The position numbers and the translations under genes were made by a program. Positions 26,919-61,780 of a DNA stretch of 64,000 bases are shown here, piece by piece (the first letter of the stretch is position 1; each line of letters begins with the position of its first letter). The stretch lies in sequence record LC597490.1. One strand, given 5' to 3'. The notes beneath the pieces were generated by a model. It was not told where the DNA came from. It made no database searches and saw only the letters and a list, made by a program, of their open reading frames with translations.

Positions 26919-27230
26919 ATGGTAAGGAAAGTGTTTCAGGTACAGGTAATCAAGTGTAATAGTGGTTGGGACGCCCATAGGGGCAAGGTCTATGATGTGA
27001 GGGATATTCGGAATCGGAATATGGATGATTTGTATCAGCTATTGGTAACGGAACGGAATACGACTAATATGGATGAGGTGTGTAGGAAAGCTCCGCATCA
27101 GGTAGAGTATCGGGACAATATTTATAAGTCGGGGCGGGCGTGCATTCCAAAGGAGATGGCAGTCCGTGTCGTTATGAATAATGAGGGTAGTTTATGTAAT
27201 CTAAAGGAGGATGAGTATGCAGGTAACTGA
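26919..27230 (+). CDS. Hypothetical protein with the C-terminal N-x6-LK-x-D motif
   Basis: Ends NNEGSLCNLKEDEYAGN. Confidence 0.75.
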   Translation: MVRKVFQVQVIKCNSGWDAHRGKVYDVRDIRNRNMDDLYQLLVTERNTTNMDEVCRKAPHQVEYRDNIYKSGRACIPKEMAVRVVMNNEGSLCNLKEDEYAGN

Positions 27231-27402
27231 CGTGACGTATGTGGCGTATATAGGTGGGTATATAAAGGACAAGGAAGTAGGTAGGTTTACGATTGAGTCG
27301 GCGGTGGAAGATGACCCTGACTTTGAGCAGATGGTTGAGGATAGACAGGTTGAAATGGAAGAAGCAAATGGTTGGGAGAATGTGTACTGGGATAGGGAGT
27401 AA
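27217..27402 (+). CDS. Acidic hypothetical protein
   Basis: Start moved to ATG 27217 (AAGGAGG 6 nt upstream). Confidence 0.75.
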   Translation: MQVTDVTYVAYIGGYIKDKEVGRFTIESAVEDDPDFEQMVEDRQVEMEEANGWENVYWDRE

Positions 27403-27428
27403 TCTCTGTCCCTTTTTTTGTACCGCTA
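27389..27428 (+). terminator. Intrinsic terminator followed by CCGCTA
   Basis: GGGATAGGGA/TCTCTGTCCC stem, T7, CCGCTA at 27423. Confidence 0.7.
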
Positions 27429-27465
27429 TGGTATCATATTTTTATTATGAGCAAGGGGGATTTTT

Positions 27466-27663
27466 ATGGAGCAGTTAGTAACTGGTTTATATACGAGTCA
27501 TGAGGAGTTAGTGGAGGCGGGCTTCGCCTTTATGGAAACTCAATTACATGATGAGGTAAAACCCATTCATACATATAGTAAGGGTAATAAGGTATATTAC
27601 TTCGTGGAGAATAGTCCAGGGGAGTATATGTTTATGTATGGATTGAAAGGGGCAGTTGCATGA
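27466..27663 (+). CDS. Hypothetical protein
   Basis: 65 aa with SD. Confidence 0.75.
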   Translation: MEQLVTGLYTSHEELVEAGFAFMETQLHDEVKPIHTYSKGNKVYYFVENSPGEYMFMYGLKGAVA

Positions 27664-27908
27664 ACTCGCATTGTCTGGGTAACGTCGAAGAGATATATCA
27701 GCAAACGATGGTGGGGCTTGTTGAGCAACTTAAAAAACGCCGTCAAGAGAAAGGGTTAACTCAGAAACAGTTGAGTAAGTTAGCGACCATTGATACGAAA
27801 ACTATCCAGAAGATAGAAACAGGGAAGTGGTTGCCATCCATGCGGAGTTTGATGTTAATGTCCGAGGCATTGGATATGACACTGTTCTTTGATTTACGTA
27901 TTAAGTGA
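27660..27908 (+). CDS. XRE-family helix-turn-helix regulator
   Basis: LKKRRQEKGLTQKQLSKLATIDTKTIQKIETGKWLPSMRSL. Confidence 0.92.
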   Translation: MNSHCLGNVEEIYQQTMVGLVEQLKKRRQEKGLTQKQLSKLATIDTKTIQKIETGKWLPSMRSLMLMSEALDMTLFFDLRIK

Positions 27909-28058
27909 TTTTTGTATATTTATAAGGATATGTTTTATTTACACCGAGGAATCTTGCACAGTCTATACATATTCTTGTATAAATATAGTTTTGTAGAATA
28001 TGAGAAGCGTGGGGACGTTATCTCAAAAAAAATTGAAAATGAAAAGGAGAGATTTACA

Positions 28059-28583
28059 ATGGCAGCATTCGGCGCTAAAGCAACACAAACAGAAGAAACA
28101 AAAGTTCAACAGGAGGGTACTACTGCAACAATGGAGGCACCAAAACCAGAGGCTCCTAAACCGCAAGCACCAACTATGGATGTGAAAGCACCTAGAGAGG
28201 CTCGTGCCGCTACTCTACGTTTTAACAGAGGAGCAAATGACCCAACATGGTTTTTAAATCGTGAGGGAGAGCTTGAAATGGTAACTGATGAAGATGAGAA
28301 CAAGGCGATTGGTATTACAAAGATTTATGCTCGTGCGGCAACAGAAGCACAATTTAACAATGGTATTATTGCGAACGTGTCTATTGATACAATCATTGGA
28401 CGTATTGAGGGACTACAGATTCGTGAAACAAAAGAGCGTGATGGTAACATTCAATTAAGTGAGCCATCTAGTTCTTATATGTCTGGAGACCAAAGAAAGT
28501 ACAATAACTATACGAAACTAACGGCTCCAGTACGTGCTCAGATTTTGAGTCATGTATGGTCACAGTTAAGCCCTGCGGAGTAA
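28059..28583 (+). CDS. SpoVG-like (PC4-fold) nucleic-acid-binding protein
   Basis: Start moved to ATG 28059; ITKIYAR..IIANVSI..RIEGLQIRE..GNIQLSEPS..VRAQILSHV follows the SpoVG element order. Confidence 0.6.
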   Translation: MAAFGAKATQTEETKVQQEGTTATMEAPKPEAPKPQAPTMDVKAPREARAATLRFNRGANDPTWFLNREGELEMVTDEDENKAIGITKIYARAATEAQFNNGIIANVSIDTIIGRIEGLQIRETKERDGNIQLSEPSSSYMSGDQRKYNNYTKLTAPVRAQILSHVWSQLSPAE

Positions 28584-28608
28584 TCCCAGGGTTTTCTTTT
28601 TTCCGCCA
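28571..28608 (+). terminator. Intrinsic terminator followed by CCGCCA
   Basis: CCCTG..GGA-GTAA-TCC..CAGGG plus T-rich tail. Confidence 0.7.
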
Positions 28609-28833
28609 TGCCCAGTAGTTGGGTAGTGGTGTGCCGCTAACAGAGGTTGTCCATTTTAAGGCACCTAGCGGGCTTGTAACGAGGGCGTAGTCTTTTCTGG
28701 TACAAATAGTCTTTGTAGCTGATTGACCCGCCGAGAGGAGGACGAGAATGCGACCAGCACATTGGTTATCACTTATCTTTGCATTCATACTACTATTATG
28801 TATGATACTGATTCGTATACTAGGAGGGATAGT

Positions 28834-29082
28834 ATGAGAGTTATATATGGGGGCTTACAGTTTGATGCTTCGGATATGCATACACCAGAGGGAGTTATTA
28901 ATATATTGGCGGAGTCTTTTCCTGAGTTAGGTAATGGCAATGCTATATATAAGAGGAATGGTAACATACTCCGTATATATATGAAGCCAGCTCAAACGCT
29001 GAAGTCATTCCGCCAACAAGTAGTCTACGAGAACAATAGGACTACTGTCACAACTCTAAAGCAGGAGGTGCGGTATGCGTGA
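28834..29082 (+). CDS. Orphan ubiquitin-like domain with the C-terminal motif
   Basis: Start moved to ATG 28834; MRVIYGG..ILAESFPELGN aligns with the repeat at 54788; ends NNRTTVTTLKQEVRYA. Confidence 0.75.
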   Translation: MRVIYGGLQFDASDMHTPEGVINILAESFPELGNGNAIYKRNGNILRIYMKPAQTLKSFRQQVVYENNRTTVTTLKQEVRYA

Positions 29083-29392
29083 GGAGTATAGAGCTGTACA
29101 GGAAGAGGATTTAATAGGCGAGCCTATATATGTATATATACCCAAACACAGTAACGAACTACTTGATGGTCAGTATATATATGTACGGGAGTATAGTCTA
29201 ACAGGAGACTTCGCCAACCTCCAACATGGCTCTTATCAGATACACAACTGTCCACACAATGATAAACTCCTATCTAGCGAACGCAACTATAGGGAGTACA
29301 ACATGTGCATAGATAAGAGTAGTTGTATAGAGTCCGCAGAGAGCAATACAGCGACAACAAAGTATCTCAAGGTAGAAATACCCTTGGACTAG
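29075..29392 (+). CDS. CxHND-family protein with the C-terminal motif
   Basis: GEPIYV..NCPHND; ends SNTATTKYLKVEIPLD. Confidence 0.8.
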   Translation: MREEYRAVQEEDLIGEPIYVYIPKHSNELLDGQYIYVREYSLTGDFANLQHGSYQIHNCPHNDKLLSSERNYREYNMCIDKSSCIESAESNTATTKYLKVEIPLD

Positions 29393-29565
29393 CTAACGGA
29401 CGAACCAGTGGATATAGGACACGCTAAAAGGGGGTCTGGCACCTTCGGATAGGCGTTCTGGATTCATGACTCACTCAAAGTGTTGTTATATCAACGTTTA
29501 TCCCCTATGTGCTTATATATAGTGTATAGGGGTGTTTTTATGTAAAAGGGGGTATATTTCTCTGT

Positions 29566-29760
29566 ATGGTTAATGAACTATTATCTAATATAAGTGTAAT
29601 ATCTTATGTAGTTATTATATTAGGGGTATTAGTATTTATCTCTTATATAGTTAGTTTCTATAGTAAGGTTATGTTATATGTGTATTATGTACTATCTATT
29701 ATCTTTTATATATATGTAGGAGTAATAGTTATAAAAGTATGGTTAGGGGGCGCCGAGTAG
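29566..29760 (+). CDS. Two-TM membrane protein
   Basis: 64 aa, almost entirely hydrophobic. Confidence 0.65.
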   Translation: MVNELLSNISVISYVVIILGVLVFISYIVSFYSKVMLYVYYVLSIIFYIYVGVIVIKVWLGGAE

Positions 29761-29975
29761 TGGTAGTTGTGAAAGATGATATTCTGGATCACTTTAGGCA
29801 AGCGTTATTAAATGAACGTGAGTATGGTATGTTAATATGTCGTCGGGGTCGTATAGTTACTCTTTACTATATAGATGGTGCTTTTTATATAAGAGGTAAG
29901 AGTACTGTTAAATATGGTATAGCTGATGATTTATTAAGAGAAGAGATATTAACTGGTTATATAACATGGATATAG
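29739..29975 (+). CDS. Hypothetical protein
   Basis: ORF present; true start probably a downstream GTG. Confidence 0.65.
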   Translation: MVRGRRVVVVVKDDILDHFRQALLNEREYGMLICRRGRIVTLYYIDGAFYIRGKSTVKYGIADDLLREEILTGYITWI

Positions 29976-29985
29976 GAGGCGGCCT

Positions 29986-30216
29986 ATGATTAGTTTAGCT
30001 GAAATAGCTTTTGTTACGTACTTGAAAAAGGTATTAAATCATGACAAGGATATTATTCATGTTACAGGTCAAGGTTTATGGGCGACATTAGAATATGATT
30101 CATTTAAGCATTCACTTGTATTATCAGGTGGAAGTGGTAAACATCCTATTAGTGATGAGGAATTTATTAATGCATTGAATAAAGGTAAAGTAGAGATTGT
30201 AGGTGGGCGACTATGA
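29986..30216 (+). CDS. Hypothetical protein, weakly similar to 31424-31633
   Basis: 76 aa, GGAGG SD. Confidence 0.75.
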   Translation: MISLAEIAFVTYLKKVLNHDKDIIHVTGQGLWATLEYDSFKHSLVLSGGSGKHPISDEEFINALNKGKVEIVGGRL

Positions 30217-30470
30217 TGGTGCAATATGGAGAGCATTCATTTGAAATAGCTGGTTTACCTAATCCTGATGATATCATGGAGTTACTACATGAGGTATTCC
30301 CTGAGTTAATCTATAGTGGATACTATCATATAGAAGGTGAGACTATGATTGTTCAATGTAAGTTGGTTACTAAGCTGGCGAACATGCAACGTGCTTTTAA
30401 AGAAAATGTAGCTATTCGTATTACAAATGAAAACCGTGTTGTTTTCTTTAAGAAGGAGATGACTATATGA
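30213..30470 (+). CDS. Orphan ubiquitin-like domain with the C-terminal motif
   Basis: VQYGEHSFEI..DDIMELLHEVFPEL; ends TNENRVVFFKKEMTI. Confidence 0.72.
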   Translation: MMVQYGEHSFEIAGLPNPDDIMELLHEVFPELIYSGYYHIEGETMIVQCKLVTKLANMQRAFKENVAIRITNENRVVFFKKEMTI

Positions 30471-30805
30471 CAAGGTATCAGTTCTTTGTAAAGGTAAAGG
30501 ATGAGGATGAATTACCACGGGATTATTTTATGTGGCGACCTTATGTTGGTAAGGTGTTATTGGTAGAAGGGACTTCTAAATGTTTTCGTGATAATGTTGT
30601 GTTACATATAGTGAAGTGTGAACACAATGATGAGCATTATGGTGAAGACCACAAGCAATATCAGAAAGGCTGGGCAAGTATCTTAGATAAAGCTGTTACT
30701 TTAGTTAATGTAGTAGAGGAAACTAAGGATGCAGTGGAAATAGATATGAGCAATGTCATTGTTATGAAGGATTGGAGTGGTAGGCGTGGCAGTCCAGTTA
30801 AGTGA
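30467..30805 (+). CDS. CxHND-family protein without the C-terminal motif
   Basis: VGKVLLV..VKCEHND. Confidence 0.8.
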   Translation: MTRYQFFVKVKDEDELPRDYFMWRPYVGKVLLVEGTSKCFRDNVVLHIVKCEHNDEHYGEDHKQYQKGWASILDKAVTLVNVVEETKDAVEIDMSNVIVMKDWSGRRGSPVK

Positions 30806-30874
30806 TATAGGTATTATTGTATTCCTGATTGTTATGATTGCAGGGGATATTTATTTACGAGGAGATGATGATTA

Positions 30875-31309
30875 ATGCCGAACGTAGTTACAGTTAAATT
30901 ACCTGATGGTAGAACAAATGCTTATGAGCCGACATCTAGTGAAGCAACTCGTCTTGATATTATGCTTTCACTTATGAGCATCTATGGTGCAGAAGTTAGA
31001 TTTGATGGTATTCATCATCGTTATATTGTAAGTCCACCTGTTGAACAAGATGAAATAGATGCACGTATTCGAGTTGCATTAGAAACTTGTGTATTAACAC
31101 ACGGTGAATTAACAGACAAGGATAGGTTTTTACTCAAGCTATTAATGGAACGCAAAGAAATACCTATTGAATATCGTAATGAAGAATGCATTTTAAAAGT
31201 AAGCGCTGATTACGACCACTTTACTTCTGTTATTAATGCTGTTGAGTATGTCTTTGGCTTAATGGATGTTGTTCATCATATTAGTGTAGGTAGGTTAACT
31301 TTAAGATAG
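30875..31309 (+). CDS. Hypothetical protein
   Basis: 144 aa with SD. Confidence 0.75.
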   Translation: MPNVVTVKLPDGRTNAYEPTSSEATRLDIMLSLMSIYGAEVRFDGIHHRYIVSPPVEQDEIDARIRVALETCVLTHGELTDKDRFLLKLLMERKEIPIEYRNEECILKVSADYDHFTSVINAVEYVFGLMDVVHHISVGRLTLR

Positions 31310-31319
31310 GAGGGTTCTT

Positions 31320-31424
31320 ATGAATAAGTGGGGTTGGCTAGGCGTGACTCTTGTTGGTGCAGTTATTAGTTTTTATGGTAATAAGAAAGTACAAGAGGAA
31401 GTAAGAAAGGAGCTGGGTATTTAA
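31320..31424 (+). CDS. 34-aa single-TM peptide
   Basis: Hand-read MNKWGWLGVTLVGAVISFYGNKK...; GGAGG SD. Confidence 0.6.
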   Translation: MNKWGWLGVTLVGAVISFYGNKKVQEEVRKELGI

Positions 31425-31633
31425 TGTCTATAGCTGAAAAGTTATTATTAAATATGATTCGTAAAGAGGTTACTTATAAGCCTGTTGATGTTGTGTATTG
31501 TACGAATGTTGTTCAATTAAATTATAGCTCTCCTAAAGGAATGTTTTATGTAAGTGTAAATGGTAAAAGTGAAGAATTAAGTGGTGAAAGATTAATTCAG
31601 TTAATCAATATTAATGAATTACGTCCATTATAA
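31424..31633 (+). CDS. Hypothetical protein
   Basis: 69 aa with SD. Confidence 0.75.
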   Translation: MSIAEKLLLNMIRKEVTYKPVDVVYCTNVVQLNYSSPKGMFYVSVNGKSEELSGERLIQLININELRPL

Positions 31634-31646
31634 GGAGGAATTGTTT

Positions 31647-31763
31647 ATGTGGTATTCAACTAAAGATACTCGTTGGAAAAAAGAATCATTGATTGTGGGG
31701 ATTATTGGTTCTACTTTATTATCAGCAGTTATTACAGCAGGTTATACATTAACAGTGTTTTAG
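31647..31763 (+). CDS. 38-aa single-TM peptide
   Basis: Hand-read MWYSTKD..LIVGIIGSTLLSAVITAG; AAGGAGG SD. Confidence 0.6.
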   Translation: MWYSTKDTRWKKESLIVGIIGSTLLSAVITAGYTLTVF

Positions 31764-31772
31764 GAGGAAGTT

Positions 31773-31973
31773 TTGTTGGATTTTTTACGTATGATCTTTG
31801 TGGATAATGAATTTATTATGCGGGCAGCGTTTTTACTAACGACTTGGATTATTGTGGGATACTCCATCAGCCGTGTAATAAGAGCAAGAAAACTATGTGA
31901 TATTATGACTTGGTTAACTATTGTTACCGTAAGCTATTTGTTTACGACTCTAGTTATTCAAGTCATGATATAG
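31773..31973 (+). CDS. Two-TM membrane protein
   Basis: Hydrophobic 66 aa with SD. Confidence 0.7.
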   Translation: MLDFLRMIFVDNEFIMRAAFLLTTWIIVGYSISRVIRARKLCDIMTWLTIVTVSYLFTTLVIQVMI

Positions 31974-31985
31974 GGGGAAGTTGTT

Positions 31986-32237
31986 ATGAATTTAACTCCA
32001 GTACTTGTAATTGGATTAACAATATTGCTATTAATGATTGGTTCGGCAGCCATATTTATTTTGAGTTTATTGTTTTTAGAGGTATCTAAAATTAGCAAGA
32101 ATATACTAGCGAAAGATTACAACCAAGGTGTTAAGTATTTCTTTATTGTTATTTTATTATCTGTAAGTGAATTTATCATGGTATTAGCTGTTATTGCTCT
32201 TTATACTATGATTGCATCTTATGTAGGAGGTATGTAA
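31986..32237 (+). CDS. Two-TM membrane protein (hairpin family)
   Basis: TM-short polar loop-TM. Confidence 0.75.
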   Translation: MNLTPVLVIGLTILLLMIGSAAIFILSLLFLEVSKISKNILAKDYNQGVKYFFIVILLSVSEFIMVLAVIALYTMIASYVGGM

Positions 32238-32480
32238 ATGAGTGGTTCATTTGTTGTGATTGTCTCAAGTATTATGTTATTCATTACCTTCGTTATTATG
32301 ATGGTATTACTTGCTTTATTTGTTACTGCTGTTATTAAAACTGTTAGTAGTGTACGTGATGATATGTATAAAGTAGCTGGGGCTTATATGGGCGTCGGCT
32401 TTGCTATTCTATTCTGCATGTTTATTATGTCGTTACCTGTTTATTTTCTATACGACTTAATTGTTTCTAAATTAGCATAG
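32238..32480 (+). CDS. Two-TM membrane protein (hairpin family)
   Basis: Same architecture as neighbours. Confidence 0.75.
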   Translation: MSGSFVVIVSSIMLFITFVIMMVLLALFVTAVIKTVSSVRDDMYKVAGAYMGVGFAILFCMFIMSLPVYFLYDLIVSKLA

Positions 32481-32489
32481 GAGGTAGCT

Positions 32490-32732
32490 ATGATTCCGTT
32501 TATTGATATGATAGTTACTGGTTTTATGATTTTTCTTTTATTTAATATGTTTGCTATCGGCATCTGGTTTGCAATTATGCTTATGAGTTATGTAGGTGAC
32601 TTAATCAACAATGTAAGAACAAAGGATTGGTATAATTCAGCAAAAGCTTATGGTGGTTTTGTAGCATTTGCGACACTTTTATGTTTTGATATCATAGGCA
32701 TGTTAGCGATACTTGATACAATTATTAAATAA
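32490..32732 (+). CDS. Two-TM membrane protein (hairpin family)
   Basis: Same architecture as neighbours. Confidence 0.75.
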   Translation: MIPFIDMIVTGFMIFLLFNMFAIGIWFAIMLMSYVGDLINNVRTKDWYNSAKAYGGFVAFATLLCFDIIGMLAILDTIIK

Positions 32733-32746
32733 GAGGAGAGATAGTT

Positions 32747-33031
32747 ATGGTAGATAAAATATATGATTGGATTAAACAAGGTAAGCATGTCTTAATTAAA
32801 GACAAGTCTAAAATTGTATATCATTTTTATCCAGCTTTAAAGAAAGACCATTTTGCTGCAAATGTATTTGGTATTGAGTATGGAACATTTGGTTCTCCAA
32901 TACCTTTTAATGATGAAAGTATGCAAAAATCCATCAGAAATCAAGCTACTGAAGACAATGTAGAATTTTATGAAGATGGTGACAGCGCCAAAGCTGAATT
33001 ACTGAAATTTGGTTATAAGTATGCTTCTTAA
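32747..33031 (+). CDS. Hypothetical protein
   Basis: 94 aa with SD. Confidence 0.75.
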   Translation: MVDKIYDWIKQGKHVLIKDKSKIVYHFYPALKKDHFAANVFGIEYGTFGSPIPFNDESMQKSIRNQATEDNVEFYEDGDSAKAELLKFGYKYAS

Positions 33032-33266
33032 TATCTTGTTGTACTTATTCTTCGGTGTTCTTCTTATTAATGTAGTGATTTTATTCTTTGTTATTCTCAT
33101 GGAGTTTTATAAAAATGTAGTGCAGTTTTTTAAAAGTATACGTAGAAAAAACAAAGATGATATCATTAAATACTATGGTATATCTACTGGTTTCTTTTTA
33201 GGTATGATTTTAATGTCATTTGTTATCTATGCAATTGCTACTCCATTGCTAAATGCCTTTCAATAG
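33021..33266 (+). CDS. Two-TM membrane protein (hairpin family)
   Basis: Start moved to ATG 33021. Confidence 0.72.
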   Translation: MLLNILLYLFFGVLLINVVILFFVILMEFYKNVVQFFKSIRRKNKDDIIKYYGISTGFFLGMILMSFVIYAIATPLLNAFQ

Positions 33267-33275
33267 GAGGTTGTT

Positions 33276-33632
33276 ATGAACAAGTTTTACGATCAAATCA
33301 GATGGGGACGTGAAAAGCCTGAGAACTATGGCAAACCTTTCTTTGTTAAAGTAGATAAGTATAAAGATGACAAGGACCTCAGTGTTTGGGAACAACTAAA
33401 AGATAAAGTTATTTTAGTTGTAGAGTATGCTGAAGGTGGTAAGTACGAGCATTTATCTAGGTCCGACTATCAAATCATGCCACATCCGTTTAATGATGCG
33501 ATTAGAGATGATTGGCCTCCTCATTACTTTGAAAATGCACATTGTATTGTAAAAAGATTATGTACGGTATATGTCGAAAACAATGAGCAAGCAACAATTG
33601 GTATGAAGGAGGAGTTTGATTGGACTTCTTAA
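33276..33632 (+). CDS. CxHND-like family protein with the C-terminal motif
   Basis: GKPFFVKV..PHPFND; ends NNEQATIGMKEEFDWTS. Confidence 0.8.
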   Translation: MNKFYDQIRWGREKPENYGKPFFVKVDKYKDDKDLSVWEQLKDKVILVVEYAEGGKYEHLSRSDYQIMPHPFNDAIRDDWPPHYFENAHCIVKRLCTVYVENNEQATIGMKEEFDWTS

Positions 33633-34176: not shown

Positions 34177-34187
34177 GAGGACTTTAC

Positions 34188-35375: not shown

Positions 35376-35388
35376 AGGAGGGATTTTA

Positions 35389-54683: not shown

Positions 54684-54787
54684 TATTATCATAGATTTTA
54701 AGGAAAGCCATGTAATGGATGTAAGTTCATAGGAACTTTATCATATAAAAAATAAAAAAATTGACAATTGAAAGGGAGTTATTAATT

Positions 54788-55639
54788 ATGCGTAAAGTAG
54801 TATATGGTTCAACAACAGTAGACATCGAGGACAACAACTTAACAGTGGAGGACATTCGTGAAGTAATGTCTGAAACATACCCTGAGTTAGCAAATGCAAC
54901 ACACACTGAGCGTGATGGTGTTATTGAGTTTAAGGTACAGGCGGGCACGAAAGGTGCTCTTCGTGTTGTTAAGTATGGTTCAACTACAATCGACATCGAA
55001 GATGATGCGTTAACTGTTAATGATATCCGTGAAGTTATGTCGGAAACTTACCCTGAATTGGCGAATGCATCTCATACACAAGAGGGTAACGTTATCGAGT
55101 TCAAGGTGCAAGCTGGTACAAAAGGAGCGCTCCGTATTGTAAAATACGGTTCGACTTCTATTGATATCGAGGACGATGCTTTAACAGTCAACGATATCCG
55201 TGAGGTAATGTCTGAGACTTACCCAGAGCTTGCTAACGCTTCTCATACGCAAGAAGGGAACGTTATTGAGTTTAAAGTCCAAGCAGGTACGAAAGGTGCT
55301 CTCCGTGTTGTAAAATACGGAAGCACTTCTATCGACATTGAGGATGATGCATTGACTGTAAATGACATCAGAGAGGTTATGTCAGAAACATATCCTGAGT
55401 TAGCAAACGCTTCTCATACTCAGGAAGGAAATGTCATCGAATTTAAAGTACAAGCTGGTACAAAGGGTGCTTTACGAGTAGTAAAATATGGTTCTACTAC
55501 AATTGATATCGAAGACGACGCACTAACTGTTAACGATATTCGTGAAGTAATGTCAGAAACGTATCCAGAACTAGCAAATGCATCTCATACTCAAGAGGGC
55601 AATGTGATCGAATTTAAAGTGCAAGCAGGAACTAAAGGT
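54788..55639 (+). repeat. Five tandem 171-bp coding repeats
   Basis: Units begin at 54788 (168 bp), 54956, 55127, 55298, 55469; proteins nearly identical, many third positions differ. Confidence 0.95.
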
Positions 55640-55687
55640 GGTCTTGAGTTCTTCAAAGCTATTGCACCAAAATTAAGAAAGAAGTAA
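54788..55687 (+). CDS. Penta-ubiquitin-like precursor (PRTRC protein C-like units ending AGTKG)
   Basis: ATG 54788 after AAAGGGAG; 56 + 4x57 aa repeats with YPEL and AGTKG, plus a 15-aa tail. Confidence 0.88.
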   Translation: MRKVVYGSTTVDIEDNNLTVEDIREVMSETYPELANATHTERDGVIEFKVQAGTKGALRVVKYGSTTIDIEDDALTVNDIREVMSETYPELANASHTQEGNVIEFKVQAGTKGALRIVKYGSTSIDIEDDALTVNDIREVMSETYPELANASHTQEGNVIEFKVQAGTKGALRVVKYGSTSIDIEDDALTVNDIREVMSETYPELANASHTQEGNVIEFKVQAGTKGALRVVKYGSTTIDIEDDALTVNDIREVMSETYPELANASHTQEGNVIEFKVQAGTKGGLEFFKAIAPKLRKK

Positions 55688-55693
55688 TATGAT

Positions 55694-55727
55694 GGGATGG
55701 AGGCCTTGGGCTTTCATCCCTTTTTTT
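55694..55727 (+). terminator. Intrinsic terminator after the poly-Ubl gene
   Basis: GGGATGGAGGC/GCTTTCATCCC plus T7. Confidence 0.8.
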
Positions 55728-55764
55728 GGTGTAATTAAGTTGTATTTTTAAAGGAGGAATAGAT

Positions 55765-56148
55765 ATGGCTGAAGACAGAAGTATGCAAGAAGTATTAGAT
55801 GACATCCTTAGTGTTGCAGAAGGTGAAGAAACTCCAGTACCAGCTGAAGCAGCTATTGAGCAAAATTCATGGGAAAGAGAAGGTTTTGGTGCATTAGAGG
55901 CATTTGTTTGTGAGAGATTAGAAGATTTACCTCACCAACCGATTCTTAGTGCAGATATCAAAACAAAGGTTAATAGAATCATGTCTGCTGAAAAGGTATC
56001 TGATTTAGATGATTTATCGGTGTCTGCATTAGAAGCAACTGTTGAGGAAATGAGACGTCCATTAAACGGTCATTTGAATCGTTTGGATGATTTTGCGCCT
56101 CGTGTAGCTCGTGCAATGCCAATTGAAAGAGAAAGTGACTTTATCTAA
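55765..56148 (+). CDS. Acidic hypothetical protein in the Ub-like cluster
   Basis: 127 aa, AAAGGAGG SD. Confidence 0.8.
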   Translation: MAEDRSMQEVLDDILSVAEGEETPVPAEAAIEQNSWEREGFGALEAFVCERLEDLPHQPILSADIKTKVNRIMSAEKVSDLDDLSVSALEATVEEMRRPLNGHLNRLDDFAPRVARAMPIERESDFI

Positions 56149-56162
56149 AGGAGGGAATTAAT

Positions 56163-57692
56163 TTGACTAATCTAACAGAATTAAGAAGTCGTGTATCACA
56201 TGTAGTATCATCTAGAAGATTATTGTCTGATGGTTTAATTAAGGACCATATGGCGATTCCAACAAACGTAGCTGAAGAAAAGAAAATTGTTCAAGACACA
56301 GTTTTTGAAGCAATTAAAAATACATTTATTGGGTGCCGTATTAATCCCAATAAAAATGCATTCTCTGTTAAACTTGATGGTGCGATTAACGTTAAAGCAC
56401 AAGAGTTATATGATTATATCCAAGAGCATCCACATTGGAAATCATTTTTAGAATCTCAACATTCTAGTAAGTTACGTACAATATTAAACTTACAAAATGT
56501 GTATCAAGAAAGGAGAGAATTAAAATTTAAAAGAGAAGATGATGGACGTCGCTTTATTTATGTCCCGTTTGAACCACATGATATTCCGAGTTATCATGAC
56601 CAAGGTTTATATCATATGCTTCAGTATTTGAAACAAAGTTTCGACAGAGAGAAAGCAGCATCTGTTATCTTTGATGAAGTAATGCAATTGATTGAAACTG
56701 AACGTCAACGTCGTATCGAAGAACGTAATCGTTTAATGCAACGTATCGAAGCGAAGTACAAGGAAGATATCAAAGCAAGCTTGTTGAAACCAATTGGTAC
56801 GATTCGAGGAGATGTTCGTGAGAAACTTATCCAAGAACGTATGGTTAAATGGTGTAATGAGCAAGGTTTAGCGCCAGCGATTCCTCAAGAGCTTACATAC
56901 CAGAACATTATTCCAGTTGGTACGGAAGTATCAGTTGTTGTTAAGTCAGGTTCTCAAGAAGAAGGATGGTTTGCAGTTCCACGTTCTGGAGGATTTGAGA
57001 TTCCTGAAGGCTTTGAACGTTTAATGGTTTATGATAATGTAACTCGTCACGATGCATTACATCAACGTTCACGTAGTGGTTCAGCTCCAATCGTAATCAA
57101 TGAAGATACATTCACTGAGTTCGATATCAATTACTGGAAGCACTTACTACCTGAAGAACATGCTCAGTATAAAGCAGGTTATGAGGCTGTAGTGGCTTCT
57201 GTAACAGCTGCTGAAGTTAAGATAGTACAAGACTTACTTGATGAGCAAAAACGTGAGGAAGAGGCACGTATTGAGCGTCAAAAGCAAGAGCTTGAACAGA
57301 AACGTGAAGAGTTAAGACGTCAACGTGAGCGTGAAGATGAAGAGTTGCGTCGTCTTGAAGCAACGTATGAAAGAGAAAATGAGCAGAAACGTCAAGAAAG
57401 AAAGCGTAGAAGCTTAGACGGTATTACTCGTCAATTACAAGAACAAGCTGAAACTCATACGGTAGAAGATGATGTATTAGATATCGTTGAATCTGATTAC
57501 ACAATCTTATACAATCCGTTTGGTGTAGAAAGTAAGTTCACGTTAGTACATGCAAGTGGTGAAGAAGAAAACTTTGCAAGTGAAGATGATTTAAAAGTAC
57601 GTATCTTTGATGAATTAGATTTAGATGAGCACGAAGCTGTTGTGTATCATAAAATCAATCAAAGCCGTATCTACAAACAATTAACAAAATAA
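56163..57692 (+). CDS. 509-aa protein with a long charged coiled coil, in the Ub-like cluster
   Basis: TTG start after AAGGAGGG; E/R/Q-rich helix in the C-terminal half. Confidence 0.8.
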   Translation: MTNLTELRSRVSHVVSSRRLLSDGLIKDHMAIPTNVAEEKKIVQDTVFEAIKNTFIGCRINPNKNAFSVKLDGAINVKAQELYDYIQEHPHWKSFLESQHSSKLRTILNLQNVYQERRELKFKREDDGRRFIYVPFEPHDIPSYHDQGLYHMLQYLKQSFDREKAASVIFDEVMQLIETERQRRIEERNRLMQRIEAKYKEDIKASLLKPIGTIRGDVREKLIQERMVKWCNEQGLAPAIPQELTYQNIIPVGTEVSVVVKSGSQEEGWFAVPRSGGFEIPEGFERLMVYDNVTRHDALHQRSRSGSAPIVINEDTFTEFDINYWKHLLPEEHAQYKAGYEAVVASVTAAEVKIVQDLLDEQKREEEARIERQKQELEQKREELRRQREREDEELRRLEATYERENEQKRQERKRRSLDGITRQLQEQAETHTVEDDVLDIVESDYTILYNPFGVESKFTLVHASGEEENFASEDDLKVRIFDELDLDEHEAVVYHKINQSRIYKQLTK

Positions 57693-57722
57693 ATTGTAAT
57701 ATAACTAAGGAGGAAATTTATT

Positions 57723-58448
57723 ATGGCAAACCGTCCAGATTCTATTAACATTGAGATTTTACAAGAGGGAGTTACAATCAAGACAACGAAAAATGGTGTA
57801 ACAACTTTAAAGGAAACAAATCTTGAGCAGGTTCAACGTCAATTAACAAGCAATGAGCGTATTGAGACGCCGTTGCTTCCAAGTATTTGGGGTGTACAAA
57901 AGTTTGTTAAACGTGGTAATAAAGAGTTATACGTTATTACGACTCCTCCAGGAATTCGTAAAGTACAGTACACTGGTGATGACCGTGGTGAGTATGAGAT
58001 TCCTGTACCAGCTGCGATTTGGTTTGTAACAGCACAAGAACGTTCTGGTGGCGGACGTCAATTGATTCATACAACAGTTTATGCAATTAAAAATCCTATT
58101 TTAACAGGTATTGAACAATTGTATCGTATGCCATTTAGTAACTGTGATAACTCGTACATTTGCTGGGGAGATGAGAGTCCACAAATTTCATCACCAAAAA
58201 GTGTTCAATCTATCCCAGACCGTTTCTTCTCTATGCCATTTAACAGTGACTTAGGAAGCAATGCGTATCAACCAATTAAAGAAGTAGTGGATGGAAGAGA
58301 AATTAGTCACTTCCGTATCAATCACTTATTCCGTTACTTAGATCGTAAATTGAAAGAGGATAAAGATTTCCGTTTCCCGAACAATCATTTAAATAGTTAC
58401 GAGTCATTTAAGCGTGTACTTGACCACGAACTTCGTCGTTTATCTTAA
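57723..58448 (+). CDS. Prokaryotic E2-like protein (PRTRC protein B / Prok-E2_D-like)
   Basis: LYRMPFSNCDNSYICWG and FFSMPFNSDL match the LY.aPF.Nv....ICwG and FF.s.Fn..l pattern; sits between Ubl and JAB. Confidence 0.78.
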   Translation: MANRPDSINIEILQEGVTIKTTKNGVTTLKETNLEQVQRQLTSNERIETPLLPSIWGVQKFVKRGNKELYVITTPPGIRKVQYTGDDRGEYEIPVPAAIWFVTAQERSGGGRQLIHTTVYAIKNPILTGIEQLYRMPFSNCDNSYICWGDESPQISSPKSVQSIPDRFFSMPFNSDLGSNAYQPIKEVVDGREISHFRINHLFRYLDRKLKEDKDFRFPNNHLNSYESFKRVLDHELRRLS

Positions 58449-58507
58449 TCTGTATTTTGGTAGTTTTAAAATTAAAAAAAACAAACAATTAAAAGGAGAG
58501 ATTTATT

Positions 58508-59890
58508 ATGACAAAGGCAGCAGCAAAAGCAAACGGAATGGCAGCGCTAAGAGCGAAAATGGCAGGACAAACTATGGGATTCCACACTGGTCCTCAAACA
58601 GCTGAGGTTTATGCACAAAAACCAACAAACATCGTTACAGCAGGTAATGGTGTTTTCCGTGTAATCCAAAAGGATATCGGTGCTTTCATTACGAAACTAG
58701 CTGATGGTAAGATTCCAGGTTTACCTGAAATGCAAGAAGGAGTGGAATTAGCGATTCCAAAGATTCCTTACAAGTATTGGTTACAAGTATTATCATTCTA
58801 TAAAGATGTAAATGCAAAAGATGGTACAGAAGCATCTGTTATCTTCTTCTGGAATACGAATAATGTTCAGATTCCAACTCATTATGACCCAACTCCTGCA
58901 CAAGCAGCGAAGGGTGAGTTAGGGCCAGAAGTAAAAGGTTTAACGCAAGATGGTCAATTAATCATTTATTGTCCAGTACAAAAGAACTCTGGTAGTTTAT
59001 CAGACTTTACGAAAGATTCATTTGTAGATTGGTTACGTCTTAATACAGCTCAGTTATTAGAAACACATTCTCATAATACAATGGGTGCGTTCTGGTCAGG
59101 AACAGATGACAGCAATGAGAACTATCCACAGTTCTACGGTGTTATGGGTAAAGTTTCAAGCCCACAACCTGAGTATCGTTTCCGTTATGCTTTAGGTAAA
59201 GAAAAGTTCGATTGTGAGTTATGGGAACTATTCGAAAAACCTCAAGTAAAAATGACTGAAACAGTTATTGTTAACATCCCAGGTGTAGGTGAGTACAAAG
59301 ATGAGCAAGAAGTGAAGAACTTAGACTTCAATGGTCCATGGCCGATGGTTGAATATCCAGATGATTGGATGGGTCAACATAGTAAGAGTGTATACACACC
59401 AACTTACACAACTCCGTACCAACGTAAAACATATGGTGCAGCAGGAACTCAAGTTCACGGAGGAGCAGGTGGTGGTAACTTTCCCAGTCTCCACGGTTCA
59501 GAAGCCTGGGGAGACGGCTGGGGGGATTCAGGCTACTGGCCTGGCGTTTCTGGTCAATCTGGCCTTGGCATGGGTGCGGAAGTAATCGAAGGTGACTTCG
59601 GATACGGAGAAGGTACCAGGCAAGGGCAAGAATCGTTCGAAGAATCGTACAAAAAACTCTTACAAGAACCAGTCGCAGGGCAGGGGACGTGGACGTTCGC
59701 AAAAGCATGGGAAAAGAAAGTAAGTGAAGGTCAGCTTGAAACAGATGGAACAACTGTTGATTATGTAATCATGGAACCAACTGAAGCTGAAGAACGTGAT
59801 GAAATTCATGCATTAATTGGTGAATTAATTAACTTTGGTACGTATGCGACCATCGTTGATATTGCAAGAGATGAACACCTCGTAGAGTAG
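58508..59890 (+). CDS. JAB/MPN+ metallo-isopeptidase (PRTRC protein A-like)
   Basis: ETHSHNTMGAFWSGTDD motif; upstream catalytic Glu in GTEAS; Gly-rich C-terminal extension. Confidence 0.9.
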   Translation: MTKAAAKANGMAALRAKMAGQTMGFHTGPQTAEVYAQKPTNIVTAGNGVFRVIQKDIGAFITKLADGKIPGLPEMQEGVELAIPKIPYKYWLQVLSFYKDVNAKDGTEASVIFFWNTNNVQIPTHYDPTPAQAAKGELGPEVKGLTQDGQLIIYCPVQKNSGSLSDFTKDSFVDWLRLNTAQLLETHSHNTMGAFWSGTDDSNENYPQFYGVMGKVSSPQPEYRFRYALGKEKFDCELWELFEKPQVKMTETVIVNIPGVGEYKDEQEVKNLDFNGPWPMVEYPDDWMGQHSKSVYTPTYTTPYQRKTYGAAGTQVHGGAGGGNFPSLHGSEAWGDGWGDSGYWPGVSGQSGLGMGAEVIEGDFGYGEGTRQGQESFEESYKKLLQEPVAGQGTWTFAKAWEKKVSEGQLETDGTTVDYVIMEPTEAEERDEIHALIGELINFGTYATIVDIARDEHLVE

Positions 59891-59959
59891 GCATTAGCCT
59901 ACTTTACATTTTTTTTATTGCACTACATATCTTATTTATATTAAAAGGAGAGATTTATT

Positions 59960-60817
59960 ATGAAACTTGAAAAAACTTATTCTTTAGATACTATGTACAA
60001 AATTGCTAAACACTTTATCGTAATTGGTGCTGGTGGTAATGGTGGTTACTTTATTCCACAATTAGCTCGTATGGTTTCTGTTCAAAACAAAATTCGTGAA
60101 GTACAACGTTTACCGTTACATCGTATTACAATCATTGAAGCTGATGGCGTAGAAGCAAAGAACTTAACTCGTCAAAACTTTATCTCATCTGATATTGATA
60201 AGAATAAAGGTGAAGTAATGGCAGCTCGTTATGCTCGTGCATTTGGTCTTGAAATTGGATTAGTAGCTCAGTATCTTGATAGTCCAGATATGTTAGCTAA
60301 GATTATGCGTGAAAGCAAATCAAAAGAAACACCAGTTATTTGCGGAATGGTAGATAACAATAAAACTCGTAAGTTAATGCATGATGCATTTAAATCATAT
60401 GATGGTGCATTTTATCTTGATGCAGGTAATGAAGAGTTTGCAGGACAATGTGTTCTAGGTTATAACCATCGTAAAGATCGTTTTGTTTTACCAAGAGAAG
60501 GTGGAGATTCGATTCAAAGCTTTAGCTTACCAAGTGTTTGTGAGATGTTCCCAGAGGTAATGGAAGCGAAAGATAAGTTGCCAACTGAAATGTCTTGTGC
60601 GGAACGTTCTGAATCAGCTCCTCAGAATATTTATACAAACATGACAGCAGCAAATGAAGCATTAGGATTTATTAATCATTTATTAACTAGTAATGCAACT
60701 GGTACAACACCAACTGGATTACGTGTTCATGCAACAATCTTTGATTCTCGTACAATGAATAAAACAACTCGTTTTAATCGTACAAGTGAACTTGAAAAAT
60801 ATGCAGCGGGGAAATAA
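59960..60817 (+). CDS. ThiF/E1-like adenylating enzyme (PRTRC ThiF-like)
   Basis: VIGAGGNGG, EADGVEAKNLTRQNF, VDNNKTR, YLDAGN; candidate catalytic Cys in EMSCAER; no CxxC Zn pairs. Confidence 0.92.
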   Translation: MKLEKTYSLDTMYKIAKHFIVIGAGGNGGYFIPQLARMVSVQNKIREVQRLPLHRITIIEADGVEAKNLTRQNFISSDIDKNKGEVMAARYARAFGLEIGLVAQYLDSPDMLAKIMRESKSKETPVICGMVDNNKTRKLMHDAFKSYDGAFYLDAGNEEFAGQCVLGYNHRKDRFVLPREGGDSIQSFSLPSVCEMFPEVMEAKDKLPTEMSCAERSESAPQNIYTNMTAANEALGFINHLLTSNATGTTPTGLRVHATIFDSRTMNKTTRFNRTSELEKYAAGK

Positions 60818-60845
60818 TCCCTGCTGTTTTTAGGAGGAAATTATT

Positions 60846-61319
60846 ATGAATTATACATTCTTCTGGGGTGGTATATTCTCTCAATGGCATAAATCTAAAT
60901 TTGAAGTTGATGGTATTACATTTAATTGTGCTGAACAATACATGATGTACCAAAAAGCATTATTATTTGGAGATGAAGAAGTTGCTAAGAAAATATTAAC
61001 GAAGTCTAATCCAAGAGATCAAAAGGATTTAGGTAGAAAAGTAAAAGGATTTGTAGAAGAAACCTGGAATAAACATGCGAAAGAAATTGTTTATAAAGGT
61101 AACTATGCAAAGTTCACTCAAAATCCTGAACTATTAAAAGGATTAAAGGCTACAGGTCAAACATTATTAGTAGAAGCAAGTCCTCATGATGACATCTGGG
61201 GTATTGGGTTAGATGAAAAAACAGCTCGTAAAACACCAGAAAAAGATTGGAAAGGAACAAATTGGTTAGGCGAAGTACTAACTAATTTACGATTTAATTT
61301 AATCGAGGAAGGCAAATAG
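60846..61319 (+). CDS. NADAR (YbiA-like) family protein
   Basis: FSQW, FNCAEQYMMYQKA, KFTQNPEL, LVEASPHDDIWGIG, GTNWLG. Confidence 0.92.
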   Translation: MNYTFFWGGIFSQWHKSKFEVDGITFNCAEQYMMYQKALLFGDEEVAKKILTKSNPRDQKDLGRKVKGFVEETWNKHAKEIVYKGNYAKFTQNPELLKGLKATGQTLLVEASPHDDIWGIGLDEKTARKTPEKDWKGTNWLGEVLTNLRFNLIEEGK

Positions 61320-61345
61320 TCTTCCTCTCCTTTTTGGAGGTAGTT

Positions 61346-61780
61346 ATGTATACAACTTTTAGGCAATTAATTAAAGATATGGGTTTTGATAAGACAGCTT
61401 CCGAATTTACCATGATTCTAAGGGATATCGAAAAACTGTTGGATTTTAAGATACCTATCTATATATTAGGTGAAAATCACAATAAACATTGGTATTATTT
61501 AATAGAGCATCCTGATGGATATGAAGGTGCTAATCATGTTGTTATATGTGCTTTAAGAAACATAAAGGTTTATAGAGAAAAAGAAAAAAGCCCGTATTCA
61601 GATTGGGAAGATTTTAAACTTCTCATTGATGAAGATGGTGACTTTACTGGTGATTATACTGATTTTGAATTAATGTTTAAAAATTATTGGTGGATTTCAT
61701 CAGATAAACCATTAACTTTGTTTCATTATGAAAATGAAGCACATGTGAAAAAGTTAAATAAAGAAACCCCATTTGATTGA
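61346..61780 (+). CDS. Hypothetical protein with a variant C-terminal motif
   Basis: Start moved to ATG 61346; ends ENEAHVKKLNKETPFD. Confidence 0.78.
   Translation: MYTTFRQLIKDMGFDKTASEFTMILRDIEKLLDFKIPIYILGENHNKHWYYLIEHPDGYEGANHVVICALRNIKVYREKEKSPYSDWEDFKLLIDEDGDFTGDYTDFELMFKNYWWISSDKPLTLFHYENEAHVKKLNKETPFD

Follow-up and report, generated by a model that had tools for sequence, protein, structure and literature searches.

A lineage-specific C-terminal peptide on unrelated small proteins of Bacillus jumbo phages, a putative docking tag

Why would dozens of small, mostly dissimilar phage proteins end in the same short peptide? The question is raised by a window of 64,000 nucleotides that corresponds to positions 124001-188000 of Bacillus phage vB_BceM_WH1 (record LC597490.1), a Bacillus cereus jumbo phage. 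Here the pattern N-x6-[LMF]-[KR]-x-[DE] recurs near the C-termini of small proteins, and an earlier note on this DNA had proposed that it is a docking or address peptide for one common partner. We found no description of the motif in the literature. Below, we consider whether the tail is conserved as a peptide or as nucleic acid, whether its carriers descend from one ancestor and what might read it.

Results

The pattern, ending 2-9 residues before the C-terminus, is present in 17 proteins of the window and in 43 of the whole WH1 genome, or about one WH1 protein in seven (~14% of genes), and belongs to a tail of ~14 residues. By our own arithmetic from WH1 amino-acid frequencies, ~0.3 C-terminal matches would be expected by chance versus the 43 observed. 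Interior matches number only 2 per 73,012 residues of the whole WH1 proteome, a concentration at C-termini that bears out the earlier note. A six-frame search of the window added just 4 matches, every one in short spurious frames. Phage Edson has 43 further C-terminal tags, and a third WH1-like contig of 229 kb has 8 more within 20 kb. The 17 canonical tags and single variant first listed are all present in the genes named, the coordinates given at the time being those of the gene starts, and the spacing is invariant as claimed.

Counting the Asn as position 1, the fuller WH1 motif reads [NTS]-N-x2-[TSA]-[VLI]-x2-[MLF]-[KR]-x-[ED]-x2-hydrophobic and ends 0-5 residues before the C-terminus; beyond the first pattern, it includes preferences for N/T/S at position 0, T/A/S at position 4, V/L/I at position 5 and a hydrophobic residue at E+3. 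Position 8 is M (16), L (15) or F (12) in WH1, with I or V in 0 of 46 tags, and position 9 is K (37), R (6), N (3), L (2) or M (1), R and N together making up about 12-18%. Positions 6-7 are mainly S/T/K/N, Gly occurring at each in 4 of the 86 WH1 and Edson tags. After E11 there follow 3 residues in 32 tags, 4 in 26 and 5 in 18 (range 2-8), a stretch that is often acidic, and the last residue is often I, L, V or Y, with D, E and S also seen.

Tags in the window (all on the + strand, each running up to the stop codon) sit on several kinds of protein. CxHND family carriers are gp147 (29345-29392, NTATTKYLKVEIPLD; Edson, NTVATKSMKIEIPLD), gp162 (33582-33632, NEQATIGMKEEFDWTS), gp170 (36006-36053, NIATISGFKEDKFYE; tail pLDDT ~50 in AF2), gp172 (36692-36739, NNQSATKLKEENPFE) and the distant relative gp189 (44481-44534, NEMSIMKFKQEGVIYEV). 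SH3-like carriers are gp179 (38685-38738, NISQVDKFKKDADLLID), gp180 (38981-39028, NSSMVSKMRQEVDLS; Arg at position 9), gp190 (44752-44802, NESTLLSMKKEETYEF), gp191 (45017-45076, NQKVLSSLKRDNTDDWSVI; homologous carriers of a sister lineage end in LSKEW), gp192 (45310-45360, NEEAKLQLKVDDDILI) and gp193 (45618-45665, NDDTLLLFKSDEINI). Two proteins have a single Ubl-like domain: gp146 (29035-29082, NRTTVTTLKQEVRYA; Edson orthologue, NKTTITTMRQE), whose body is paralogous to the polyUbl repeat, and gp151 (30426-30470, NENRVVFFKKEMTI). The singletons gp173 (37185-37235, NALSIPRFRIEERRYD; Arg at position 9, Lys in the Edson orthologue, NDAHVLNFKGE) and gp194 (46196-46243, NESYMYKMKSELETR) are tagged as well, as are gp141 (27180-27230, NEGSLCNLKEDEYAGN) and gp168 (35299-35343, NEDSSSKLKVEEIV; Edson, NQEAASKMRKE). 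The variant, gp218 (61733-61780, NEAHVKKLNKETPFD), has Asn at position 9; Edson gene 2140, matched to it by synteny alone, bears a canonical tag (NTSSIVQLKSD, at 183057).

Genome-wide, the carriers form 23 BLAST clusters, reduced to about 12-14 groups by profile-profile merging (hhalign), so the earlier count of at least four families stands as to there being several but was an underestimate. Could these groups nonetheless be tandem paralogues of one superfamily that diverges fast, the tail being simply its best-conserved segment? The carriers are indeed small, arranged in tandem arrays and fast-evolving (29-88% WH1-Edson identity), and hhalign links some clusters. However, hhalign probability is <2% for most cluster pairs, and the SH3-like barrel, the CxHND alpha/beta model and the beta-grasp of the Ubl paralogues are different folds. 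Moreover, gp028, a conserved 210-residue P-loop ATPase, is tagged in the WH1 lineage, but its homologue in the relative KLEB27-3 is not. Common descent is accordingly a very improbable account.

Paralogues point the same way. The two CxHND proteins said to be untagged have lost the tail differently: gp171 (36046-36381, ending in WLTKIEEEINYD) by a clean deletion of 11 residues, and gp152 (gene 30467-30805) by decay followed by an extension (30707-30805, beginning NVVEETKDAVE). Together with the unrelated carriers, these cases confirm that the tail is a portable module, gained, lost and decayed independently of the carrier domain.

In AF2 models of two different folds, the tag is not packed on the carrier domain. 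In the gp190 model, residues 1-74 form a barrel and the tag is a helix (78-89) of low confidence, and the CxHND family yields an alpha/beta model with a low-confidence tail, mostly coil. The low confidence, the disagreement between the two families and the helical hydrophobic moment of the tags, which is no higher than that of shuffled sequences, are counted against a docking reading.

Is the tail conserved as a peptide or as nucleic acid? The next gene's Shine-Dalgarno sequence (SD) is overlapped by 9 of the 17 window tags and by 40 of the 86 in WH1 and Edson, close to the half originally estimated. In gp141, AAAGGAGG lies inside K-E-D, and AAGGAGG in the gp162 tag is the SD for an unannotated TTG-start ORF (33620-33796). 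The last residue and stop of tagged genes frequently form ATGA. In a sister lineage, the junction AAG GAG TGG TAA n ATG is strict and fixed at the DNA level, and KEW is missing from three array-terminal genes; since KEW is fixed there as an SD, part of the motif in that lineage is not protein-driven. On this evidence, the tag might only reflect in translation a ribosome-binding site for the following gene, an enhancer of translation or some other DNA/RNA junction signal.

Several patterns oppose such a nucleic-acid element. Information in WH1 tags resides at codon positions 1-2 and not 3, leaving third positions free. Near gene 3' ends, the DNA pattern is in frame 40 times versus once out of frame, and it occurs in only 1 of 73 intergenic leaders. 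Position 8 takes ATG, CTN/TTR and TTY, not ATH or GTN, and in the sister version all four Ala codons are in use. A used SD is not overlapped by 46 of the 86 tags, and 3 tags, at operon ends, have no downstream gene; these are still conserved between orthologues. Within the window, gp147 lacks the overlap because the next gene is 173 nt away, and a terminator-like hairpin (35342-35360) directly follows the gp168 tag, which therefore has no SD role. The gp179 and gp192 tags have separate SDs (3' of the stop and downstream, respectively), the gp193 tag overlaps none and the gene after gp194 is 51 nt away.

Orthologues agree with a protein-level reading. In 30 orthologue pairs of 58% median identity, every pair keeps the Asn (100%), 7 of them with a change between AAT and AAC, and identity at the x positions is ~40%. 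Orthologues interchange L/M/F, K/R and D/E, with 5 K/R swaps in the 30 pairs. The strict tag is kept by 38 of the 41 best Edson homologues, a count not biased by tag-based selection. Codon periodicity, frame bias and orthologue swaps all place conservation at the protein rather than the DNA level, in line with the initial view that the SD cannot account for the Asn or the hydrophobic residue of the tag. Judged by these patterns, the WH1 tag is evidently selected as protein, and a nucleic-acid origin is very improbable. Dual coding has helped to shape the basic-acidic half: in about half the tags, the purine-rich K-x-E codons double as the ribosome-binding site of the next gene, a dual use and not the cause of the motif.

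Metagenomic sister phage lineages carry their own versions of the tag at the C-terminus, namely N-[KR]-[ED]-A-x3-L-x-K-E-W, N-x2-A-L-x-L-L-N-x-E-E-A-W and N-x2-A-x3-L-P-S-x-E-D-x-Y. At least 13 families bear these versions, and two of the families are homologous to WH1 carriers. C-terminal enrichment of the core alone was found in every tag-bearing lineage and was absent in KLEB27-3 and unrelated phages. From the C-termini compared, the carriers of any one phage lineage evidently all use the version proper to that lineage. Such coordinated change across whole lineages, homologous carriers included, argues for a single co-evolving receptor.

Two readings dispense with such a receptor. One is a nascent peptide acting in cis, the last 12-16 residues modulating termination or re-initiation in coupled arrays from within the ribosomal exit tunnel. 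It would fit a motif that is always within ~20 residues of the stop, is present on unrelated proteins and is mostly found in arrays where stop and start codons overlap or adjoin. However, the distance from motif to stop (2-8 residues after E11) varies and differs between lineages, tags are kept where an operon ends or a gap of as much as ~200 nt follows, and lineage-specific versions would be unexpected if the reader were the conserved ribosome. We know of no similarity of the tag to arrest peptides, and consider this reading improbable. The other invokes no external partner, the tail being a structural element in its own right, for instance a helix for oligomerisation, or a cap that shields the C-terminus of small proteins from host exoproteolysis or tagging. 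The carriers are soluble rather than membrane proteins, and AF2 allows a helix with the Asn as N-cap. Yet the tail is unpacked on the domain in both models, and an invariant Asn and spacing across at least 12 folds, with concerted version switches, are hard to explain without a common reader; we regard this second reading as unlikely, though less so than the first.

A specific reader was suggested by the ubiquitin-like (Ubl) genes of WH1, which encode a polyUbl, a JAB peptidase and a ThiF-type E1. The SUMO consensus is psi-K-x-[DE], with I or V usual at the hydrophobic position. The tag core has this form, so a phage E2-like/E1 pair (PRTRC-like) might read it and conjugate the Lys to the phage Ubl. 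WH1, Edson, L021, L022 and L024 have both tag and Ubl machinery, the carriers gp146 and gp151 are Ubl-domain paralogues, and in two sister-lineage contigs tagged arrays lie just downstream of JAB-ThiF. The tag differs from the consensus, however, in that its Lys is variable, through R or N at position 9 and swaps between orthologues, I and V never occur at position 8, and an invariant Asn stands seven residues upstream, which, like positions 4 and 5, SUMO-type recognition leaves unexplained. It is also always C-terminal, and sister versions shift the K one residue later or lack it (L-P-S-x-E-D, L-N-x-E-E), losing the psi-K-x-[DE] form. KLEB27-3 keeps the whole set (E1, JAB, Ubl and E2-like genes) without tag enrichment. 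The lysine-acceptor reading, an option in the earlier note, is disfavoured because R or N can stand in place of K and because KLEB27-3 has the Ubl system without the enrichment; we now hold it improbable.

Discussion

We favour, with a probability of roughly 0.65, the reading of the tail as a clade-specific, portable short linear motif, a putative docking or address peptide for one co-evolving receptor. The original proposal of one common partner survives in this form, helped by the portability of a protein-level module, its unrelated carriers and the versions shared within lineages, and shorn of the Lys acceptor. The tag would be a flexible extension of accessory proteins that are small and soluble and have many unrelated folds, and would fold onto its receptor; a single shared receptor would therefore mean one shared fate for some 40-50 proteins.

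What the receptor might be is a matter for guesses. Our first, a tentative one, is a structure built by the phage (the inside of the procapsid or the scaffold being likeliest), into which fast-evolving accessory proteins would be loaded so as to travel with the DNA. Carrier genes lie among replication and nucleotide-metabolism genes, outside the structural module, and no annotation assigns a tagged protein to the virion; these facts are counted against capsid loading, and forty-odd cargo species would be many. The second guess, a little more doubtful, is a protease or unfoldase adaptor that times carrier turnover. WH1 encodes its own ClpP homologue; the variable distance from tag to C-terminus and the presence of ClpP without tags in KLEB27-3 are counted against an adaptor. 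Another host hub seems less probable again, and docking to the phage Ubl machinery, with the Lys not an acceptor, rather improbable.

Should the tail prove to be an address tag, it would unite 40-50 'hypothetical' proteins of each genome in one functional cohort, and a 14-residue peptide, fusable to any reporter, would provide a handle on their common receptor, with lineage-specific versions on homologous carriers as a natural specificity swap. The boldest form of the idea, which we offer as speculative, is a proteome-wide 'postcode' in this Bacillus jumbo phage clade. A lineage-specific peptide would route 40-50 fast-evolving accessory proteins (~14% of genes) to one destination, either the capsid, as an anti-host arsenal injected with the DNA, or the phage Ubl-like/proteolytic machinery, with the carriers as interchangeable substrate receptors. 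Routing to either at such a scale would be undescribed for any phage. The tag could then also serve for protein loading or control in Bacillus phage systems. The sharing of codons between tag and SD is itself a clear case of dual coding, of a protein motif and of the next gene's ribosome-binding site.

Known systems resemble the tag in different respects. Degrons of ssrA (with SspB), lambda CII and MuA are flexible, portable C-terminal peptides, as the WH1 tag appears to be, can be bipartite and are read by adaptor and unfoldase. They act at the extreme C-terminus through nonpolar last residues, whereas the WH1 motif is followed by 2-8 often acidic residues, and they are not known to be common to tens of phage proteins. 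The SSB C-terminus and the tails of T7 gp2.5 and gp4 are likewise short, acidic and terminally hydrophobic or aromatic, and different proteins dock on the same surface; in WH1 the direction would be reversed, a large set of tagged proteins sharing what is presumed to be a single receptor. The tag does not resemble the SSB tails found here, of phage and host type, which end in DDDLPF. The BC-box/SOCS-box, a short helical motif by which unrelated viral and cellular substrate receptors plug into one ligase scaffold, has no sequence similarity to the tag, but by analogy a 'variable warhead plus constant anchor' reading would fit the WH1 carriers.

The capsid targeting sequence of phage T4 lies at the N-terminus, has ~10 residues with a prohead-protease site at its end and is cleaved off; portable to foreign proteins, it leads to prohead entry and injection with the DNA. 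Reportedly described for T4 internal proteins by Mullaney and Black in 1996, it too is a short terminal peptide common to small phage proteins that are unrelated and highly polymorphic. In WH1 the tag is C-terminal, of other sequence and on far more genes (43); if the address reading is right, it would be a second, independent case of a terminal targeting peptide in tailed phages.

Encapsulin cargo targeting peptides are C-terminal, ~10-residue, flexible and portable, occur on unrelated cargo enzymes and bind the inner face of an HK97-fold shell through hydrophobic anchors and a basic residue near the C-terminus (PMC7925596). Their conserved G-S-L core, as in PLTVGSLRRGG (PMC7925596), is lacking in the WH1 tag, where Gly is rare at positions 6-7, and the tag's Asn and acidic residue have no counterpart in them. 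The WH1 tag shares their C-terminal place, apparent flexibility, portability and unrelated carriers, and, as far as a comparison of letters goes, their small-aliphatic-x-x-Leu-basic arrangement resembles its [TSA]-[VLI]-x-x-[MLF]-[KR].

Results

A C-terminal motif shared by small phage proteins

The window matches positions 124001–188000 of Bacillus phage vB_BceM_WH1 (LC597490.1) with 100% identity. WH1 is a 229,829-bp myovirus of Bacillus cereus, and in the phage collection only Bacillus phage Edson is closely related to it (85% nucleotide identity). For genome-wide counts we assembled the whole WH1 genome, in which the window is contained. The tag, N-x6-[LMF]-[KR]-x-[DE] (Asn as position 1, the hydrophobic residue as 8, K/R as 9 and E/D as 11), occurs 21 times in a six-frame translation of the window, 17 of them in real genes and all 17 ending 3–8 residues ahead of the stop. 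These canonical tags and the gp218 variant were all recovered in the genes named by the earlier note. Genome-wide, 43 WH1 proteins carry the pattern 2–9 residues from the C terminus, compared with 2 interior matches (73,012 residues) and about 0.3 C-terminal matches expected by chance, as calculated from residue frequencies. Edson has 43 further tags at 140–234 kb, and a third, WH1-like contig of 229 kb has 8 within 20 kb. The tag is a real and strong motif.

Relaxing single positions one after another refined the motif to N/T/S at position 0, N at 1, T/A/S at 4, V/L/I at 5, M/L/F at 8 (I or V in 0 of 46), mostly K with fewer R and occasional N at 9, mostly E with fewer D at 11 and a hydrophobic residue at 14. 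In most tags, 3, 4 or 5 residues follow E11. An amphipathic-helix test of the tag (hydrophobic moment, 100 degrees) was not significant.

The tag is carried by unrelated soluble proteins

With the tag trimmed, the 86 carriers (43 from each of WH1 and Edson) formed 23 BLASTP clusters, which profile–profile comparison reduced to ~12–14 groups, most pairs scoring below 2% probability; the proposal of a portable module on unrelated families was thus borne out. Carriers in the window include the SH3-like family (gp179, gp180 and gp190–193), the CxHND family (gp147, gp162, gp170, gp172 and, more distantly, gp189), gp146 and gp151, each of which is a single domain paralogous to the PRTRC_C-type Ubl repeat, and singletons. 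Beyond the window, the tag appears in several further arrays and on two larger proteins, one of them gp028, a P-loop ATPase 95% identical in Edson, whose homologue in the outgroup Bacillus phage KLEB27-3 lacks the tail. The two CxHND paralogues previously seen to be tag-less are gp171, with an 11-residue deletion of the tag, and gp152, with a decayed copy of it.

For gp190, AlphaFold2 predicted an SH3-like barrel with confidence and, after it, a helix of low confidence that corresponds to the tag. The gp170 model differed, being alpha/beta, and its tail was of low confidence and mostly coil. Foldseek with the SH3-like model returned only generic barrels (E > 0.01), a homologous-protein search with gp190 returned gp190 itself only, and searches of ten tagged proteins against Pfam and PHROGs yielded two unnamed PHROGs, which match the SH3-like body, and nothing else.

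Carriers evolve fast, with 29–88% identity between WH1 and Edson versus 80–97% for core proteins. The tag is present on 41 of ~131 small soluble plus-strand proteins versus 0 of 32 small membrane proteins. Many small predicted membrane proteins (40–85 residues, several in paralogous runs, all without the tag) are interspersed among the tagged soluble proteins at window positions 31641–34916, 37627–38442, 39025–39249 and 42564–42791.

Conservation acts on the protein

Over the 86 sites, nucleotide information was codon-periodic, high at codon positions 1–2 and low at position 3; for example, codon 4 is xCx, codon 5 is xTx, and codon 8 is any Leu codon, ATG or TTY. Near 3' ends, the tag-equivalent DNA pattern shared the reading frame of the upstream gene in 40 cases and departed from it in one; only 1 of 73 non-coding leaders contained it. 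Among 30 WH1–Edson reciprocal-best pairs (median 58% identity), the tag Asn was kept in 100%, with 7 AAT/AAC changes; position 8 stayed within L/M/F, K/R and D/E swapped, and the x positions were only ~40% identical. A definition based on the N-terminal half only, meant as an unbiased test of K-x-E, proved too noisy (spurious ORFs) and was replaced by a best-homologue test without selection on the Edson side, which found the strict tag in 38 of 41 best Edson homologues, the remaining three being two near-variants and one deletion.

In 40 of 86 tags, close to the half estimated earlier, K-x-E shares nucleotides with the Shine–Dalgarno sequence (SD) that the next gene uses. The other 46, which include tags before a terminator, before a gap of up to ~200 nt or before no gene, are conserved between WH1 and Edson. 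Taken together, the codon periodicity, frame bias, orthologue swaps, best-homologue retention and tags without SD overlap indicate selection on the tag as protein. Two concerns raised by the earlier note, that the enrichment might reflect SD overlap and that conservation might lie in the DNA, did not hold, as enrichment survived SD control and conservation was in the protein. The purine-rich K-x-E codons often double as the ribosome-binding site (RBS) of the next gene, a dual use. An unannotated 58-residue ORF with a TTG start (window 33620–33796, plus strand), hydrophobic and probably a membrane protein, has its SD, AAGGAGG, within the gp162 tag, an arrangement kept in Edson.

Lineages carry their own versions of the tag

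Bacillus phage vB_BauM_KLEB27-3, the closest outgroup as judged by the large terminase (58% identity), retains a ClpP homologue, Spx, NADAR, Sir2 and the E1, JAB, Ubl and E2-like genes. The carrier families are all missing from it, and neither the tag nor its core is enriched at its C termini. Searching 1.84 billion representatives with the SH3-like family profile gave 103 matches, and several distant small SH3-like homologues end in a tag-related tail. Among the contigs of these homologues are two further phage contigs with tandem arrays of 8–14 small genes. The arrays follow Prok-JAB and ThiF at a distance of a few genes and begin immediately past an NT5C gene and a ~0.6-kb gap. Almost every gene in them terminates in N-[KRQ]-[ED]-A-x3-L-x-[KR]-E-[WFY]. 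The 27 tails of this sister version are spread over at least 13 BLAST families, and two of these families are homologous to WH1 carriers (the SH3-like family and an 80-residue family of the WH1 201-kb array). Other contigs have more versions, N-x2-A-L-x-L-L-N-x-E-E-A-W and N-x2-A-x3-L-P-S-x-E-D-x-Y. The sister-lineage contigs include Logan SRR23411711_126765, JGI Ga0642623_16011 and Logan SRR19629883_493.

All versions share a core in which N is followed by a small residue at +3, by Leu/Met/Phe at +7, and then by an acidic residue and an end that is hydrophobic or aromatic. By itself, this core was enriched at C termini in every tag-bearing lineage (39 versus 7.5 expected in WH1, and 17 versus 0.5 and 8 versus 0.5 in the sister-lineage contigs L022 and L024), in contrast to KLEB27-3 (8 versus 5.6 expected, no enrichment) and unrelated phages (none). 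Within one lineage all tags share one version, and homologous domains carry different versions across lineages. Such concerted versions are as predicted by co-evolution with one common reader; since DNA identity among tags is low, they are not predicted by independent convergence or gene conversion.

In the sister lineage, genes meet at the junction AAG GAG TGG TAA n ATG, which forms a perfect SD, a 7-nt spacer and a start codon, with the K, E and W codons fixed in DNA. This fixed junction, AAGGAGTGGTAAnATG, links 80–100-residue genes in tandem arrays (L022 5094–8300 and L024 8629–10925), so that the K-E-W codons with which each gene ends form the RBS of the following gene. KEW is missing from 3 genes without a directly adjacent downstream gene, where N-K-E-A-x3-L is kept with synonymous codons free; one tail on another contig, L026, retains K-E-Y with no gene adjoining it. 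In the sister lineage, therefore, the RBS has partly shaped the C-terminal half of the tag; the N-terminal half acts in all lineages as a protein signal only.

Candidate partners and expression signals

The suggestion that the tag Lys is a SUMO-like Ubl acceptor is disfavoured: K is not invariant, I/V are excluded at position 8, and K is shifted or lost in sister versions. The presence of the Ubl system without tags in KLEB27-3 likewise speaks against an acceptor site. Neither ClpP nor the Ubl system is a phyletic correlate, as both occur in this tag-poor phage. The AAA ATPase gp183 was dropped as a partner given its homologues in seven IMG/VR phage loci without nearby WH1-form or core-only tags. 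Both gp182 and gp183 are members of widespread PHROGs; a PDB sequence search gave only a weak p97 AAA match, a related-locus search with gp182 found nothing, and the tag is not coupled to this pair. Mimicry of SSB tails was rejected, as these end in DDDLPF and differ from the tag.

In window 26400–46399, sigma-70-like promoter matches were fewer than in shuffled sequence (70 versus 91 ± 12), and terminator-like hairpins, for example after gp142, gp147, gp168, gp182 and gp183, were enriched (16 versus 6.7). k-mer enrichment in leaders yielded terminator T-tracts only. Because sigma-70-like sites are not enriched before the arrays and terminators are, there is a weak hint that the arrays are read by phage sigma factors and are not immediate-early.

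Other genes of WH1

The PRTRC-like ubiquitin-like system (window 54761–60817, plus strand, and 24444–26522) comprises a five-repeat polyUbl (PRTRC_C), a JAB/PRTRC_A protein, a ThiF E1 and a 241-residue candidate E2-like protein without a family match, and a PcfJ-domain protein is encoded upstream of it; KLEB27-3 and the sister-lineage contigs conserve this set. The large terminase (window 3312–6236, minus strand, 974 aa) apparently contains an intein: residues ~44–466 match helicases and RecA that carry inteins in Staphylococcus and Bacillus phages. The KLEB27-3 TerL aligns across its full length. The paralogues gp208 and gp209 (window 52051–53526 and 53665–54477, plus strand) share an N-terminal domain, after which an acidic-LLP-LLLM..GG motif is repeated 3–4 times. 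Neither has a match in Pfam or PHROGs, both are absent from KLEB27-3, and the annotation lists gp208 as a virion protein.

Outside the window, the gene labelled 'enterotoxin_gp300' at the WH1 genome end (L006 5026–5796) shares 36% identity with one that the KLEB27-3 annotation calls a lytic transglycosylase with a 3D domain; the enterotoxin name is probably an artefact of how a cell-wall hydrolase domain was named. DNA polymerase III alpha (WH1 194353–198551; L002 20353–24551) is annotated as three ORFs with gaps of ~0.4–0.7 kb; in KLEB27-3 it is in two pieces either side of an HNH endonuclease.

Discussion

We have shown that the tag is a protein-level, portable and flexible C-terminal motif with lineage-wide concerted versions. 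It would act as a docking peptide for a single receptor co-evolving with it, a reading to which we assign a probability of roughly 65%. Our first guess for the receptor's role, offered tentatively and by analogy, is procapsid loading. Precedents for terminal peptides are the capsid targeting sequence of T4, borne by polymorphic internal proteins, the coat-binding C termini of scaffolding proteins and the targeting peptides of encapsulins. Slightly less probable would be an adaptor for a protease or unfoldase that times turnover; a host hub seems unlikely, and docking on the Ubl machinery, with the Lys not an acceptor, more doubtful still.

Our literature search found the tag strings in no relevant context and no mention of WH1 or KLEB27-3, and PRTRC papers were silent on phage tags, in agreement with the earlier note, which did not recognise it as a described motif. 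Encapsulin targeting peptides have a G-S-L core (PMC7925596), which the WH1 tag, in contrast, does not match. No published description of the tag was found. It is best filed with portable terminal address or docking peptides, among which it is unusual in its scale (~14% of genes) and in its lineage-specific versions.
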